From the sequence record PV754031.1: a DNA stretch of 64,000 nucleotides; one strand, written 5' to 3'. The translations under genes were made by a program, and so were the position numbers. Shown piece by piece: positions 45,998 to 50,892 of this stretch (position 1 is its first letter; every line of letters starts with the position of its first letter). The notes below the pieces were generated by a model. That model worked only from the letters and a program-made list of their open reading frames with translations. It was not told the origin of the DNA and ran no database searches.

Positions 45998-47521
45998 ATG
46001 ATTGATACATTCATTAACTATTATGCCATGTTTATTGATATCTCTCAAAAGAACATGGTGATGGGTGGTGCGATTGGTATGGCGATTGGTGGTGTATTAT
46101 GGACCACTATCCGAGGTCTACCAAGTAAGATAGTTAGATTCACATTAAATCAATTTACAGTTAGTTTACATATCACTAATACTGGTAATGGTTTAAATGA
46201 GAAAAACTTTGACTCATTTATGGAGTGGTATATTAAACAACCATTAGCTGGATTTAATCGCCGTTTTTCAACCAACGTTGATGAGCAAAGTTATAGTGCA
46301 ACTAAACAGAAAATTGGTGTTGGTTTTGGCTTACATTTCTTTCTATTTAAAGGTAGGTTATTCTGGTTTGTAAAAGCACGTCGGGATAGTCAAATTGCCA
46401 GTAGAGATCAAATGGATATTACTATTCGAGGATTGTCTAGGAGTAGTAAACTAATTATTGATTTAGTAGATGCTTATCATTGGCGCCCAAGTGAAAGGGG
46501 TTTGACTATTTCACATTGGGACGGTAATCGTTGGGGCAATGAGATTGAAGTTACTAAACGTGACATCAATACGGTAATTCTACGTAAAGACATCAAGGAA
46601 GAATTTCTTAGCAAAATCGAAGAATTTTATTCTGATCGGAAATGGTACGATGATCGTGGATTACCGTATAAATTCACTTGTGTTCTAACAGGTCCTCCTG
46701 GTACTGGTAAAACATCTATCAGTAAAGCCATTGCTTCACATTTCAATAAAAATGTTAGTGCGCTATCACTAGCCTCGATGACTAACGATAGTCTTAGAAG
46801 GGCATTTACTACATTACCTAAAGGAAATATTCTTTTAATCGAAGACTTTGACGATACGCCGGCAGTTAAAGATCGCGTTTTAAGTGATCCAGTCAAAATA
46901 GATAAAGAGATAAAATCATTAGAAAAAGAGTATTCGTTTGTTGATCTGGCTGAAAAATATCCAGCTACATGGAATGACCTCAAAGATGATTATGATGGTT
47001 TTGCAATGGTTGGGGTGAACGATACTATTTATATTTTTAATGAAGAAGGTATTGACGAAGGCTATGGGTTAAGTGGCGATCTCCTGGCTGAATTTGGGGT
47101 TTCGAAATGGGCGGATGAAAATGACCCATTATTTACCACTATTAGGCGATGGTGGAAATTAAAGAATTTTGCGAAAAGTGGAACAGTAAATGAACAGTCA
47201 ACCAATGGATTAACTTTGTCAGCTCTATTAAATGGGCTAGATGGCATTGTTCCACTAGATGAGACTATGACCATTCTAACTACAAACCATCCTGAGAATA
47301 TCGATAAAGCACTTCTAAGGAAAGGTCGCGTTGATTACATGGTGGAGATTCCATATCTACGAGATCAAGAAGTTAGGGAGTATATTAAACTAATGTTCCC
47401 TGACTTCGATATTCCTGAAGATATCAGATTTAAAGATCAACCAGGGTGTGATGTAATGGCGGCTTTTTCAAATAACCGTTATGACCCTAATGCTTTTATC
47501 AATAGTCTATTGAAATATTAA
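45998..47521 (+). CDS. BCS1-like membrane-anchored AAA+ ATPase
   Basis: N-terminal TM, KRDINTVIL...WYDDRGLPY, GPPGTGKT, LLIED, TLSALLNGLDG, TTNHPE, ALLRKGRVD. Confidence 0.85.
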   Translation: MIDTFINYYAMFIDISQKNMVMGGAIGMAIGGVLWTTIRGLPSKIVRFTLNQFTVSLHITNTGNGLNEKNFDSFMEWYIKQPLAGFNRRFSTNVDEQSYSATKQKIGVGFGLHFFLFKGRLFWFVKARRDSQIASRDQMDITIRGLSRSSKLIIDLVDAYHWRPSERGLTISHWDGNRWGNEIEVTKRDINTVILRKDIKEEFLSKIEEFYSDRKWYDDRGLPYKFTCVLTGPPGTGKTSISKAIASHFNKNVSALSLASMTNDSLRRAFTTLPKGNILLIEDFDDTPAVKDRVLSDPVKIDKEIKSLEKEYSFVDLAEKYPATWNDLKDDYDGFAMVGVNDTIYIFNEEGIDEGYGLSGDLLAEFGVSKWADENDPLFTTIRRWWKLKNFAKSGTVNEQSTNGLTLSALLNGLDGIVPLDETMTILTTNHPENIDKALLRKGRVDYMVEIPYLRDQEVREYIKLMFPDFDIPEDIRFKDQPGCDVMAAFSNNRYDPNAFINSLLKY

Positions 47522-47881: not shown

Positions 47882-48535
47882 ATGGCGTCAATCATTAGTC
47901 TACCTTTTATCAAACTAGTAATCAGCCGTAATAATAATTACACTGTTAACCATCAGTCAGGTGCTGATAATGTACCTCATCTATGTGTTAAAGTAAAACA
48001 TTCTAACGGTTATGCCTGGTTCGGTATTATCATTGTTGATTATGAAAAACGTACCAGCGGTTGGACTGAAGAAGAATTTAATGCAGTTGTAACTCGTTTT
48101 CATGAAGCAATGAATTCTCAATGTGATATCCAACGATTAGAAACAGACATTAACCGACTAATGGATTCCATCCAAGATGTTGTTACCGGTCGGAAACGAC
48201 CAACCCTATTTGGTGGCGATGGTAATGACTTCATTCAAATGCATCTTCAAAATAATATCCAACTTGATATTTATCGGAATGAAATTAACGAAGATACTCT
48301 AACCTATGGTGGGTATCGTGGTAAAGTAAGTCTTCGCCATGGTTATGATGAATACAGCTTCTTCCTGTATCATCGTGGTATTATTCTAAACCATTACATC
48401 GATGCAGAGATTGCTAAAGAGTTAATTGAAGATGCTCTTGATAAGACTTTCCCAGAGATTACTTATCTACCGCTAGCCACTGTCGAACCTATAGCTGTAG
48501 AACGCACTCGTAATCGACACCAGGATAAAAGCTAA
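47882..48535 (+). CDS. hypothetical protein
   Basis: AAGGA RBS. Confidence 0.85.
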   Translation: MASIISLPFIKLVISRNNNYTVNHQSGADNVPHLCVKVKHSNGYAWFGIIIVDYEKRTSGWTEEEFNAVVTRFHEAMNSQCDIQRLETDINRLMDSIQDVVTGRKRPTLFGGDGNDFIQMHLQNNIQLDIYRNEINEDTLTYGGYRGKVSLRHGYDEYSFFLYHRGIILNHYIDAEIAKELIEDALDKTFPEITYLPLATVEPIAVERTRNRHQDKS

Positions 48536-48537
48536 AT

Positions 48538-48951
48538 ATGGCTAGTCAACTTATCGTAGTTGATTTACAAAACCCTAGAAATAAACATATATACAGTGAA
48601 TTAACTCATGAACACCCTAGAACAATAACATCACATCTAGTTGAAGAATTAGATGATTTTGATGTTCATCAATATTCATACCAAGCGGAGTATAAATCTG
48701 GGATTGATCTTAGATTAATATTCTTTTGGGATGGACCATACACTGAACCAAGAGAAGAAGGTTACGAACCAACTGATCTAGAGAAAAGGTGTGTGAAGTT
48801 GTGTAGGCAATATGAGGCTGCGATTAACGGGCAATTATCTGTAGTTGATCACTCTCGGTTCCGGACGGTGTGTACCTTCAGATCAGATAATAGTTTACCA
48901 ACAACTTTAGACTGGATTCATAAAGAACCCCCATCTAAAGAGGTTGTGTAA
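48538..48951 (+). CDS. hypothetical protein
   Basis: Tightly packed ORF. Confidence 0.75.
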   Translation: MASQLIVVDLQNPRNKHIYSELTHEHPRTITSHLVEELDDFDVHQYSYQAEYKSGIDLRLIFFWDGPYTEPREEGYEPTDLEKRCVKLCRQYEAAINGQLSVVDHSRFRTVCTFRSDNSLPTTLDWIHKEPPSKEVV

Positions 48952-49044
48952 AAAATAGTAAAAGAAATACACTATTCTATGTAGTTCCTTTACGATTGCT
49001 CTTTTATCTTAGTTTCAGTTTTGCTGAAGAAGTACCAATGAGAT

Positions 49045-49067
49045 ACCCTCCCCTGATCGGGGAGGGT
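49045..49067 (+). terminator. intrinsic terminator
   Basis: ACCCTCCCC-tgatc-GGGGAGGGT followed by TTTT. Confidence 0.85.
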
Positions 49068-49092
49068 TTTTGACATCTAAGAGGAAAATATA

Positions 49093-49473
49093 ATGTGCAA
49101 ACAACATCGTGTAGTATCTATGAAAGTTACATGCACGCAAGCTCGCTATCCGATCGGTCTGTGCGATCTCGGATTTGATAATGCTGCTGATGCTCGGCAA
49201 TATCTACTAGATGTCGTCGAGTACAATATGGATCGTCTCCACCCACAACATGCTAATACATTCCAGCTACAAAATCTACAAGACGGGTTCGTAGTATCCT
49301 ACGATATCGAAAAAGATGGATCCGTTTATCTTCGGTTAACACTGGCGGCTGTAGCTTATCAATCAATCGATCTTGAGTTGGGGGTTACCGTTAAAGAAAA
49401 TGAAGGGATCAGTGTTGTAATCAAAAATTGGATCAATGGTGATTATACTGCGGGGAACAAATACTTGCAGTAA
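49093..49473 (+). CDS. hypothetical protein
   Basis: GAGGA RBS. Confidence 0.8.
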   Translation: MCKQHRVVSMKVTCTQARYPIGLCDLGFDNAADARQYLLDVVEYNMDRLHPQHANTFQLQNLQDGFVVSYDIEKDGSVYLRLTLAAVAYQSIDLELGVTVKENEGISVVIKNWINGDYTAGNKYLQ

Positions 49474-49478
49474 TACCA

Positions 49479-49600
49479 TATGTAAAGAATACCCAAATCG
49501 GGATCTCCCGGACTATCTCCCTTCAGCGTTCCCGTCCGCAAATGAAGGTGCCGCCGAGATCCCACCTATTGATAATGCCCTCCCTTCGGGGAGGGCTTTA
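49479..49600 (+). ncRNA. candidate rod-shaped small RNA
   Basis: TATG at 49479; 62% GC core; helices 49500-07/49556-63, 49520-25/49543-48, 49526-28/49537-39; terminator at 49577-96. Confidence 0.5.
49577..49596 (+). terminator. intrinsic terminator
   Basis: GCCCTCCC-ttcg-GGGAGGGC followed by TTTATTT. Confidence 0.85.
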
Positions 49601-49639
49601 TTTCGCTTAAGCCTATTTATTTTATTATAAGGGGTGAAA

Positions 49640-50371
49640 ATGACATATATCGTAAATGATGGTAAAGTCATGATTGCAGACTGCCTATTAATTGAGCGGA
49701 ATAATGCAACTGATAGCATTGGGCGACTTCCAGTATTAGATAACGGTTATATTGATCTAACTGCTAAAGCTGAAGGTGTAGATGTATATTACAATGATTG
49801 CCACAAGATAATTTTTCATCCGACTGTTACTTGGCAAGGCAAACGTGTTAAAACTATGGCTTTTGCTGGAACTATAGATAATGTTTATGATCTATTGAAT
49901 GCCCTTACCGCAGGTGTTGATTTAGCTGATTGGTTTAAAGTTGAAGTAAATATCTTGCCAGTCATAGAACGCAGGTTGTTTAATGGTAATACTTCTATGA
50001 TGTTCACTATGGAGAATGGTGACATATATACAGTTATTCTTAAAGACATGGGTATCAACATCACCAAGAAAGATTGGGCTCATTTGGGTAGTGGTGTAGA
50101 TGCAGTTAATAGTGTACTTGAGTTTATCCCTAATTGTAATGATAATGGATCAACCAAACTAACTGCACTTGAAGCATTTGCTATTGCATGTGCACATACT
50201 ACTACTGTAAGTCGTAAATTTGATTATTACATCCATGCTACAGGTGAGTACAAGCAAAATCAAGAACTATCAACTAAACAACTAAAATGGATACTAGCGC
50301 GCATTCAAAAGCGGATGGATCTTACCCGCATTTTCAATGACCGCGAATATGCCAATAACATATGGGGTTGA
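49640..50371 (+). CDS. putative Ntn-hydrolase/proteasome-beta (HslV-like) fold protein
   Basis: AAGGGG RBS then M-T-YIVNDGKVMIAD; AFAG; AHLGSG...A; EAFAIAC. Confidence 0.55.
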   Translation: MTYIVNDGKVMIADCLLIERNNATDSIGRLPVLDNGYIDLTAKAEGVDVYYNDCHKIIFHPTVTWQGKRVKTMAFAGTIDNVYDLLNALTAGVDLADWFKVEVNILPVIERRLFNGNTSMMFTMENGDIYTVILKDMGINITKKDWAHLGSGVDAVNSVLEFIPNCNDNGSTKLTALEAFAIACAHTTTVSRKFDYYIHATGEYKQNQELSTKQLKWILARIQKRMDLTRIFNDREYANNIWG

Positions 50372-50892
50372 TTTGTATGAGTAATTCTAATATGGATATG
50401 CTATATTACACTAATGTAAATTGGGAGCAATATTTTCATCATGTGAAACAACGTGCAGATGATACTGTTAAAGTAATGTATAAACCTGAATATGAAGATC
50501 TTATTGATGAAGCATGTAGGCCATTAATTAAATGGTTTAATCAATTTACCAATGTTGCAACTATTTATTGCTGTTCAGGCCATGTTGATGAAGAAACTGG
50601 TGGTAGCCCTGGATACATTAGTCTTTTATTTAAAGATACCAATGCAGAGAATTCTGCAATGCGTTTATTGCGTGAAGCAATGTGTAAGGGGCGTGAGTGT
50701 AAGATCCCATTCGAAATTGAACTGGGGGCTTATTTCGGGCATCTACATGAGACCATTGATCAGAATCACTGGGTCGCCAATCTAGTCATCCGCACCAATA
50801 GCTACAAACGTAAAAATACGTATGATCGCTATTGGCATCGTCTTTACAATATCATAACAACATGTAATACTGAGGGTTTATACACCGTCTAA
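50362..50892 (+). CDS. TYW3-like domain protein
   Basis: IDEACRPLIKWFN...TIYCCSGH...GYISL resembles the ID..I..LN..T.SSCSG(H/R) pattern. Confidence 0.5.
   Translation: MGLICMSNSNMDMLYYTNVNWEQYFHHVKQRADDTVKVMYKPEYEDLIDEACRPLIKWFNQFTNVATIYCCSGHVDEETGGSPGYISLLFKDTNAENSAMRLLREAMCKGRECKIPFEIELGAYFGHLHETIDQNHWVANLVIRTNSYKRKNTYDRYWHRLYNIITTCNTEGLYTV

Follow-up and report, generated by a model that had tools for sequence, protein, structure and literature searches.

A conserved, independently transcribed small RNA of phage phiKZ and its longer relatives in phiKZ-like Pseudomonas phages

We find that positions 49483-49603 of the 64,000-nucleotide stretch of DNA analysed here (sequence record PV754031.1; hereafter the window) are the gene for a stable small non-coding RNA of phage phiKZ, which is transcribed independently, has its own start (P130) and its own stop (T119), and accumulates far above the neighbouring mRNAs. 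Most of the RNA consists of a rod of four helices followed by an intrinsic terminator. As judged from comparative sequence analysis, the rod structure is under purifying selection across genera: compensatory substitutions have kept its pairing in phiKZ-like phages of Pseudomonas that belong to at least five named genera, and in unclassified relatives. The transcript is already catalogued, as TU198, by Putzeys et al. (2023/2024). The family to which it belongs, its covariation-supported structure, its invariant loops and the existence of long and short forms appear to be new.

Positions 48500-50500 of the window match Pseudomonas phage Bobae with 100% identity and 33 more phiKZ-type genomes with 99% or more, and the window was assigned to a phiKZ-type phage. 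The element and its flanks are identical to the phiKZ reference (NC_004629), in which the element lies within a 166-bp gap between PHIKZ288 and PHIKZ289; adding 213,689 (an offset taken from PHIKZ288) converts window coordinates to phiKZ coordinates. The features of the element, its two flanking genes and the long-form loci discussed below are collected in Table 1.

Table 1. Features of the small RNA locus and positions of long-form relatives (window coordinates, or locus and position for the long forms)
Feature	Position	Strand	Sequence, basis or remark
PHIKZ288	49093-49473		gene 5' of the element; stop codon 49471-73
Promoter P130 of phiKZ, "middle" class	49459..49482	+	AAATACTT, then TAAT, then TATG; overlaps the PHIKZ288 stop codon
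TATG	49479-82	+	published start site is the next base, 49483
Transcription start (49483) and unpaired 17-nt 5' leader	49483..49499	+	TSS 263172; X13 adapter joint 49482; fold
Conserved rod P1-P4	49500..49563	+	fold; match to model R1; covariation
P1, 8 bp	49500-07 with 49556-63	+	GGGAUCUC/GAGAUCCC
P2, 3 bp	49509-11 with 49551-53	+	CGG/CCG
Asymmetric internal loop	between P2 and P3	+	ACUAUCUC opposite UG
P3, 6 bp	49520-25 with 49543-48	+	CCUUCA/UGAAGG
AAA bulge	49540-42	+	fold
P4, 3 bp, with 8-nt apical loop	49526-39	+	GCG/CGC; loop UUCCCGUC
Single-stranded linker	49564..49570	+	ACCUAUU; same in most short-form members (alignments A2, A7)
Intrinsic terminator T119 of phiKZ	49571..49603	+	GCCCUCCC-UUCG-GGGAGGGC and UUUAUUU; TTS 263292, window 49603
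Terminator hairpin, GC-rich	49577-96, then U tract	+	UUUAUUU; fold
PHIKZ289	49640-50371		gene 3' of the element
Long form, 201phi2-1	L217:1369-1817		
Long form, PA1C	L218:1465-1893		
Long form, PhiPA3	L219:1500-1915		
Long form, Viktualia	L211:5-540		
Long form, uncultured 307-kb phage	L085:560-1190	-	

The start and the end of the RNA were mapped in the ONT-cappable-seq study of phiKZ by Putzeys et al. (bioRxiv 2023, 10.1101/2023.10.13.562163; microLife 2024, PMC10914365). Its supplement lists promoter P130 (TSS 263172, plus strand, class "middle"), terminator T119 (TTS 263292) and, running from one to the other, the 120-nt unit TU198, which contains no gene (10.1101/2023.10.13.562163). Positions 263172-263292 (+) of phiKZ translate to 49483-49603 of the window, and the sequence, the size of 120 nt and the folding energy of -46.6 kcal/mol all agree, so the element is TU198. 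In Table S7 the 120-nt RNA is a "5'UTR-derived" ncRNA candidate of PHIKZ289 (10.1101/2023.10.13.562163), and the main text counts 17 such candidates in phiKZ (PMC10914365). According to the same authors, the middle and late promoters of phiKZ are transcribed by the phage non-virion RNA polymerase (PMC10914365). The first-pass annotation of the locus, made from the letters alone, had proposed a late sRNA lying between a TATG and a terminator. Both boundaries are where it had placed them and a discrete transcript was detected by ONT-cappable-seq and in a public Nanopore run, but the promoter is classed as middle rather than late.

Public sequencing runs give the same picture. In the Nanopore cDNA run X13, the summed word depth was 1185-2552 over 49461-49562 and 771 in the next bin (to 49613), compared with about 60 in PHIKZ288 and 26 in PHIKZ289; the element thus stands about 20-100 times above its flanking genes, in contig word depths that are crude and a poor measure of expression. 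As for the ends, X13 contains a strand-switch adapter joint at 49482 and a poly(A) joint at 49604, and the Illumina run X6 contains an adapter joint at 49602. Crude as the depths are, the public runs agree with the map of Putzeys et al. (the raw-read run X24 contained no phage reads). A second poly(A) joint in X13 at 49568 (about 49567/8, in two records only) falls inside the linker and hints at a shorter species of about 86 nt that ends within this conserved segment.

A second short RNA is found one gene upstream. It runs from P129 to T118 (TU196, 89 nt, window 48982-49071, plus strand), reaches the top word depth of the stretch examined (up to 6825 in X13), and is catalogued as a "5'UTR-derived" candidate of PHIKZ288 (Putzeys supplement, 10.1101/2023.10.13.562163).

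The units that start at P128 and P129 also terminate at T119 (Putzeys supplement, 10.1101/2023.10.13.562163), and the rod therefore lies in their 3' UTR. One could thus regard it as a protective hairpin that, with the terminator, stabilises the 3' end of PHIKZ288 and other upstream transcripts and has no separate role as an RNA. We consider this very unlikely, because a start site is mapped for the RNA itself and its abundance far exceeds that of PHIKZ288, and because PHIKZ288 is confined to Phikzvirus while the rod occurs in many other genera behind different genes. Processing of the RNA from a 3' UTR is likewise ruled against by the primary start site, which was mapped by cap enrichment (Putzeys et al.), and by the promoter-like motif found upstream of the element in relatives that do not have PHIKZ288. 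This motif, of the form A(A/G)TAC...TAAT...TAT(A/G), matches the phiKZ P130 sequence and, by eye only, was recognised upstream of most members whose upstream sequence was inspected, from a few to about 130 nt ahead of the rod.

Folding of 49483-49603 yields the rod and the terminator in both the minimum free energy and the centroid structure. The fold energy of -46.6 kcal/mol compares with -31.2 +/- 3.5 kcal/mol for shuffled sequences (z = -4.44), and 0 of 200 shuffles folded as well; the opposite strand folds less exceptionally (z = -2.9). All stems named in the first-pass annotation (P1, P3 and P4), the AAA bulge and the terminator are present in both structures, and the 3-bp helix P2 has to be added to them. 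The G+C content of 62% that it reported holds for the rod (62.5%), while the full span it had annotated has 53% and the window 34.9%. It had also described CUAUCUCCCUUC as an unpaired pyrimidine-rich stretch; CUAUCUC is indeed unpaired, but CCUUC forms the 5' strand of P3. Two features bear on whether the RNA may be a base-pairing sRNA of the Hfq type, which would have a conserved single-stranded seed and a long unbroken U tail. Three single-stranded segments are conserved, namely AUCUC, CCCGUC and ACCUAUU. The U tract of the terminator is interrupted (UUUAUUU here, UUUAUGCCG in relatives), and a near-identical terminator type is found about 10 times per phiKZ-type genome. Terminator cassettes of this kind (a GC stem, a UUCG-type loop and UUUAU followed by GCCG or UUCG; here 49577-49603) recur across several phiKZ-like genera, and the RNA-seq contigs jump between their copies.

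Within Phikzvirus the element is better conserved than its surroundings. For instance, between the window and phage T2P, the segment from the start site to the linker is 96.6% identical, compared with 82% for PHIKZ288, 80% for PHIKZ289 and 75% for the terminator with its spacer (T2P and its relatives have about 80% amino-acid identity in PHIKZ288 and PHIKZ289). All three substitutions in the element fall on unpaired positions (the leader, the AAA bulge and a 2-nt bulge) and none in the stems.

Beyond the genus, distant homologues of PHIKZ289 are encoded by Psa21, D6 and Viktualia, and a related element was first spotted by eye in gene-free gaps near these homologues in Psa21 and D6. There the order of the helices is kept, the stem sequences differ, a terminator follows, and the motifs AUCUCCC, CCCGUC, GGUGC and CCACCUAUU are common to both elements and phiKZ. 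A motif scan of IMG/VR brought in further members, on contigs of uncultured jumbo phages (305-315 kb, and fragments). Five loose motif scans of viral, genome and metagenome collections were also run; the matches listed were mostly due to chance, and those remaining after a filter by model or pairing rule were on jumbo-phage contigs only.

A covariance model built from six non-phiKZ sequences, with phiKZ left out (R1), has a single match in the 64-kb window, at 49486-49572 (41 bits, E 3e-9), and also matches the 307-kb uncultured phage and PhiPA3. With a second model (R2), we obtained exactly one copy per genome in phiKZ, KEN49, PhiPA3 and Psa21 and single sites in PA1C, Viktualia, Phabio, 201phi2-1, RVTF4 and a 290-kb metagenome contig. 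The family comprises phiKZ, T2P, PhiPA3, PA1C, RVTF4, Psa21, D6, Phabio, Viktualia, 201phi2-1 and uncultured jumbo phages. R2 has no match in EL, Noxifer, Ralstonia phage RSF1, Serratia phage 2050HW or Erwinia phage Phobos. Since EL, Noxifer and the tested relatives from hosts other than Pseudomonas are blank, the element is not core to all nucleus-forming phages. The rod is unique within the window and so is not a local repeat. A search for a host RNA that it might mimic gave no match in 121 sampled Pseudomonas genomes, a weak negative in which a small share of the first-look candidates was scored.

To assess the structure across the family we used an alignment of 15 sequences (A7), which was fitted to the model and hence leans towards the structure; in it, 94.9% of the cells at paired columns hold standard pairs, compared with 38-44% when the partners are slid by 1-3 columns. 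Compensatory double changes occur at 18 of the 21 pairs (2-7 in the slid controls) and in all four helices, and the covariation score was reached by 0 of 500 shuffles. RNAalifold predicted the same helices from a plain MAFFT alignment of six non-phiKZ sequences. Several of the pairs are G-U, which would be A-C on the other strand, and it is therefore the plus-strand RNA that folds. Covariation across relatives had been put forward in the first-pass annotation as a check on its proposal. On the two points that it had named as decisive against the proposal, the results are that a discrete transcript exists and that the element is both present and structured in relatives.

Among the unpaired bases, AUCUC in the internal loop, the UG across from it and CCCGU in the apical loop do not vary, and the closing G-C pairs are fixed. 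CCCGUC is found at the apex in all members except perhaps Phabio, whose aligned sequence has gaps there. The internal loop of 201phi2-1 and Viktualia reads AUCUCUC, a difference balanced by a compensating change in P3, so the two bases after AUCUC are constrained by pairing rather than by an outside target. This weakens a simple "anti-Shine-Dalgarno" reading of the loop.

In the window and in T2P, a 64-codon frame (49436-49630) reads through the element, and it is annotated as a CDS in some records, such as that of phage Bobae. That the element is a small protein gene is nonetheless extremely improbable. The frame begins inside PHIKZ288 and runs through the terminator, the substitutions track base pairing and not codons, and in 5 of 10 members (Psa21, the uncultured L007, L014 and L016, and Phabio) the element is not crossed by any open sense-strand frame, in line with its initial description as non-coding. 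ORFs have been called across the element in several GenBank records, and these annotations can now be corrected.

The position of the element in the genome is conserved, while its closest neighbours are not. It always has homologues of PHIKZ287 and of the 137-codon neighbour of that gene upstream of it and PHIKZ289/290-like genes downstream; directly next to it, the genes vary between phages. We searched the neighbouring proteins for clues to function. PHIKZ288 has no Pfam family, PHIKZ289 is linked only weakly to HslV-type peptidases in PHROG (E 5e-5), and PHIKZ290 (window 50362-50892, plus strand) has a sub-threshold Pfam match to the tRNA-modifying methyltransferase TYW3 (E 0.0016); PHIKZ289 and PHIKZ290 adjoin the small RNA gene a few kb from a tRNA cluster. 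PDB relatives of PHIKZ288-PHIKZ290 were sought and none was found. A protein encoded by one of these neighbours as the partner of the RNA is thus unsupported by the Pfam, PHROG and PDB searches.

Further upstream, the AAA+ ATPase homologous to PHIKZ286 (window 45998-47521, plus strand) is 100% identical to that of phage SL2, but its identity falls to about 89-90% in comparisons with KTN4, PA7, T2P and most other phiKZ-type records. The genes flanking the small RNA are at least 99% identical to most of those records, and this difference points to a recombination mosaic.

Members of the family come in two sizes. In the short form the rod leads directly to the terminator within gaps of about 150-180 nt (phiKZ, T2P, Phabio, Psa21, D6, RVTF4 and several uncultured phages). 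The long form occupies gene-free gaps of about 417-530 nt in PhiPA3, PA1C, 201phi2-1, Viktualia and the 307-kb uncultured phage; with KEN49, there are six lineages in which about 300 nt of further RNA lies between the rod and the terminator. The long-form RNA, of about 350-450 nt, is multi-helix and begins with or contains the rod, which is preceded by an additional 100 nt or so in 201phi2-1 and Viktualia. When the extra regions are compared, they align block by block, and compensatory changes in consensus folds affect 12 of 45 pairs between PA1C and PhiPA3 and 6 of 89 pairs between 201phi2-1 and Viktualia. Two annotated small CDS of Viktualia (CDS0139 and CDS0140) sit on its long-form RNA.

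KEN49 (vB_Pae3705-KEN49, PP456877) is the bearer of a large 3' domain among the Phikzvirus records examined. Its flanking genes are essentially identical to those of the window, and a 280-nt insert (L003:695-975) lies exactly between the linker and the terminator. The insert has no further match among 50,697 phage records, and contains blocks common to the long forms of PhiPA3, PA1C, 201phi2-1, Viktualia and the 307-kb uncultured phage. The extra domain of KEN49 is bordered by short CYUAUU-type repeats. The 45-codon CDS annotated within the insert is probably spurious.

The phiKZ RNA is therefore the minimal version of a modular RNA whose constant part is the rod. One might go further and regard the phiKZ element as an evolutionary stump, still transcribed and functionless after the loss of the 3' domain of a long RNA; the long forms in six lineages, the KEN49 long form at exactly this site and the repeats that border its extra domain would fit such a history. 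We nevertheless hold a functionless remnant to be improbable. The rod is the best-conserved part of both long and short forms, it is more constrained than the flanking genes within Phikzvirus (the 96.6% against about 80% reported above), and short forms with all invariant loops occur in lineages of different rod type (phiKZ and Psa21). A broader reading of the same modularity, which we put forward tentatively, is that the rod may be the universal 5' core of an undescribed class of modular structured RNAs of about 120 to about 450 nt in Pseudomonas phiKZ-like (nucleus-forming) jumbo phages. Recombination at the CYUAUU linker would add and remove the large 3' domain, and the RNA would form a ribonucleoprotein with a dedicated phage or host partner instead of acting as an ordinary base-pairing sRNA or leader.

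The main rival to a free RNA is a cis-acting leader or attenuator, in which the rod would sense a protein, a ligand or the polymerase and set the passage of transcription through T119 into PHIKZ289, the short RNA being a by-product of premature termination. Several observations fit. Putzeys et al. labelled the RNA "5'UTR-derived", the longest reads from P130 extend over PHIKZ289, and between T119 and the PHIKZ289 start codon there is no mapped promoter (Putzeys supplement, 10.1101/2023.10.13.562163), which leaves PHIKZ289 with no other mapped promoter of its own. T2P, Psa21, D6 and RVTF4 each have a PHIKZ289 homologue downstream of the element, Viktualia has one farther downstream, and PhiPA3 has a positional equivalent. 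The order of promoter, structured domain, terminator and gene is that of riboswitches and attenuators, and a structured domain of the kind expected of a sensor does follow the promoter, in the form of a covarying rod with invariant loops whose transcript starts 17 nt upstream of it. On the other side, inspection of alignments A2 and A7 revealed no conserved, mutually exclusive pairing of an antiterminator and the terminator, and the terminator stems vary freely with no matching change in the rod. A small ORF lies directly behind the element in Psa21, D6 and RVTF4, two genes intervene before the PHIKZ289 homologue in Viktualia, and no such homologue was found in 201phi2-1 by tblastn; nor does any riboswitch family match. 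The differing downstream genes and the spacing of about 300 nt between rod and terminator in the long forms count against a purely cis-acting role. We therefore regard the attenuator as unlikely.

On balance we think it probable that the element makes a free RNA that acts through its invariant loops, which would most likely bind a protein or a second RNA during middle and late infection, and that T119 throttles transcription into PHIKZ289 as a side effect. The two invariant loops would form the recognition surface for the protein or RNA partner, and the RNA would act in trans, as part of a ribonucleoprotein, as a sponge or as a riboregulator.

We also asked whether the element belongs to a known class. 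The Rfam scan suggested in the first-pass annotation matched no family: at gathering thresholds, Rfam 15 found only 7 tRNAs in the whole window, and with E values up to 10 the region 49400-49700 gave weak, terminator-driven matches of at most 18.5 bits, compared with cut-offs of at least 41. Neither the long forms at E values up to 1 nor the KEN49 insert matched anything in Rfam, whose families include 6S, SRP, tmRNA, Y RNA, T-box, riboswitches, ribozymes, group I/II introns, GOLLD, ROOL and HEARO. ARAGORN likewise detected no tRNA, tmRNA or tRNA-like domain, whether at the window element or at six loci of long forms. Two specific identities were also considered and rejected. A T-box reading of GGGUGGUACC in the 201phi2-1 long form fails because the string is not conserved and no T-box model matches, and no group I intron model matches the KEN49 insert. 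We found no paper on the structure, family or function of the RNA. The papers on ChmC eCLIP and phiKZ Tn-seq do not address the locus; in the phiKZ transposon screen, the region around the element is a cluster of non-essential genes, and the element is not addressed there.

PhiKZ-like phages are a model for phage "nuclei" and candidates for therapy, and their RNA biology is almost unexplored. We know of no function for any of the roughly 20 phiKZ ncRNA candidates. With a defined transcript, a structure kept across genera, three short invariant elements and natural long and short variants, this RNA is ready for experiments.

The closest known entity is TU198 itself, which is the same molecule (Putzeys et al., PMC10914365). 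There it is an entry in a supplementary table only, with no structure model, conservation beyond the genus, long form or function, and our reading differs in treating it as an independent gene instead of a mere piece of a leader. Another short promoter-terminator RNA with cross-genus occurrence is the 5'UTR sRNA upstream of the tail gene gp182 (in phiKZ, and sRNA005 in 201phi2-1; PMC11512511), and the RNA upstream of PHIKZ302, at 59.6 kb of the window, likewise is short with a terminator close behind its promoter. Both are other loci of unrelated sequence, and R2 finds a single site in the window and a single one per genome. Riboswitch and attenuator leaders have the same order of promoter, conserved structured domain, intrinsic terminator and gene, but the element differs from them in lacking a conserved competing helix and a family match, in its varying downstream genes and in its inserts of about 300 nt. 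GOLLD and ROOL are large structured non-coding RNAs linked to phages and prophages. The long forms show no sequence or structure match to them in Rfam, are smaller, and are confined to Pseudomonas phiKZ-like phages, of which phiKZ itself retains only the 64-nt rod; by analogy, they may nevertheless resemble GOLLD and ROOL, as RNAs of several helices that are transcribed from a promoter to a terminator of their own within a tRNA-gene-rich part of a phage genome.
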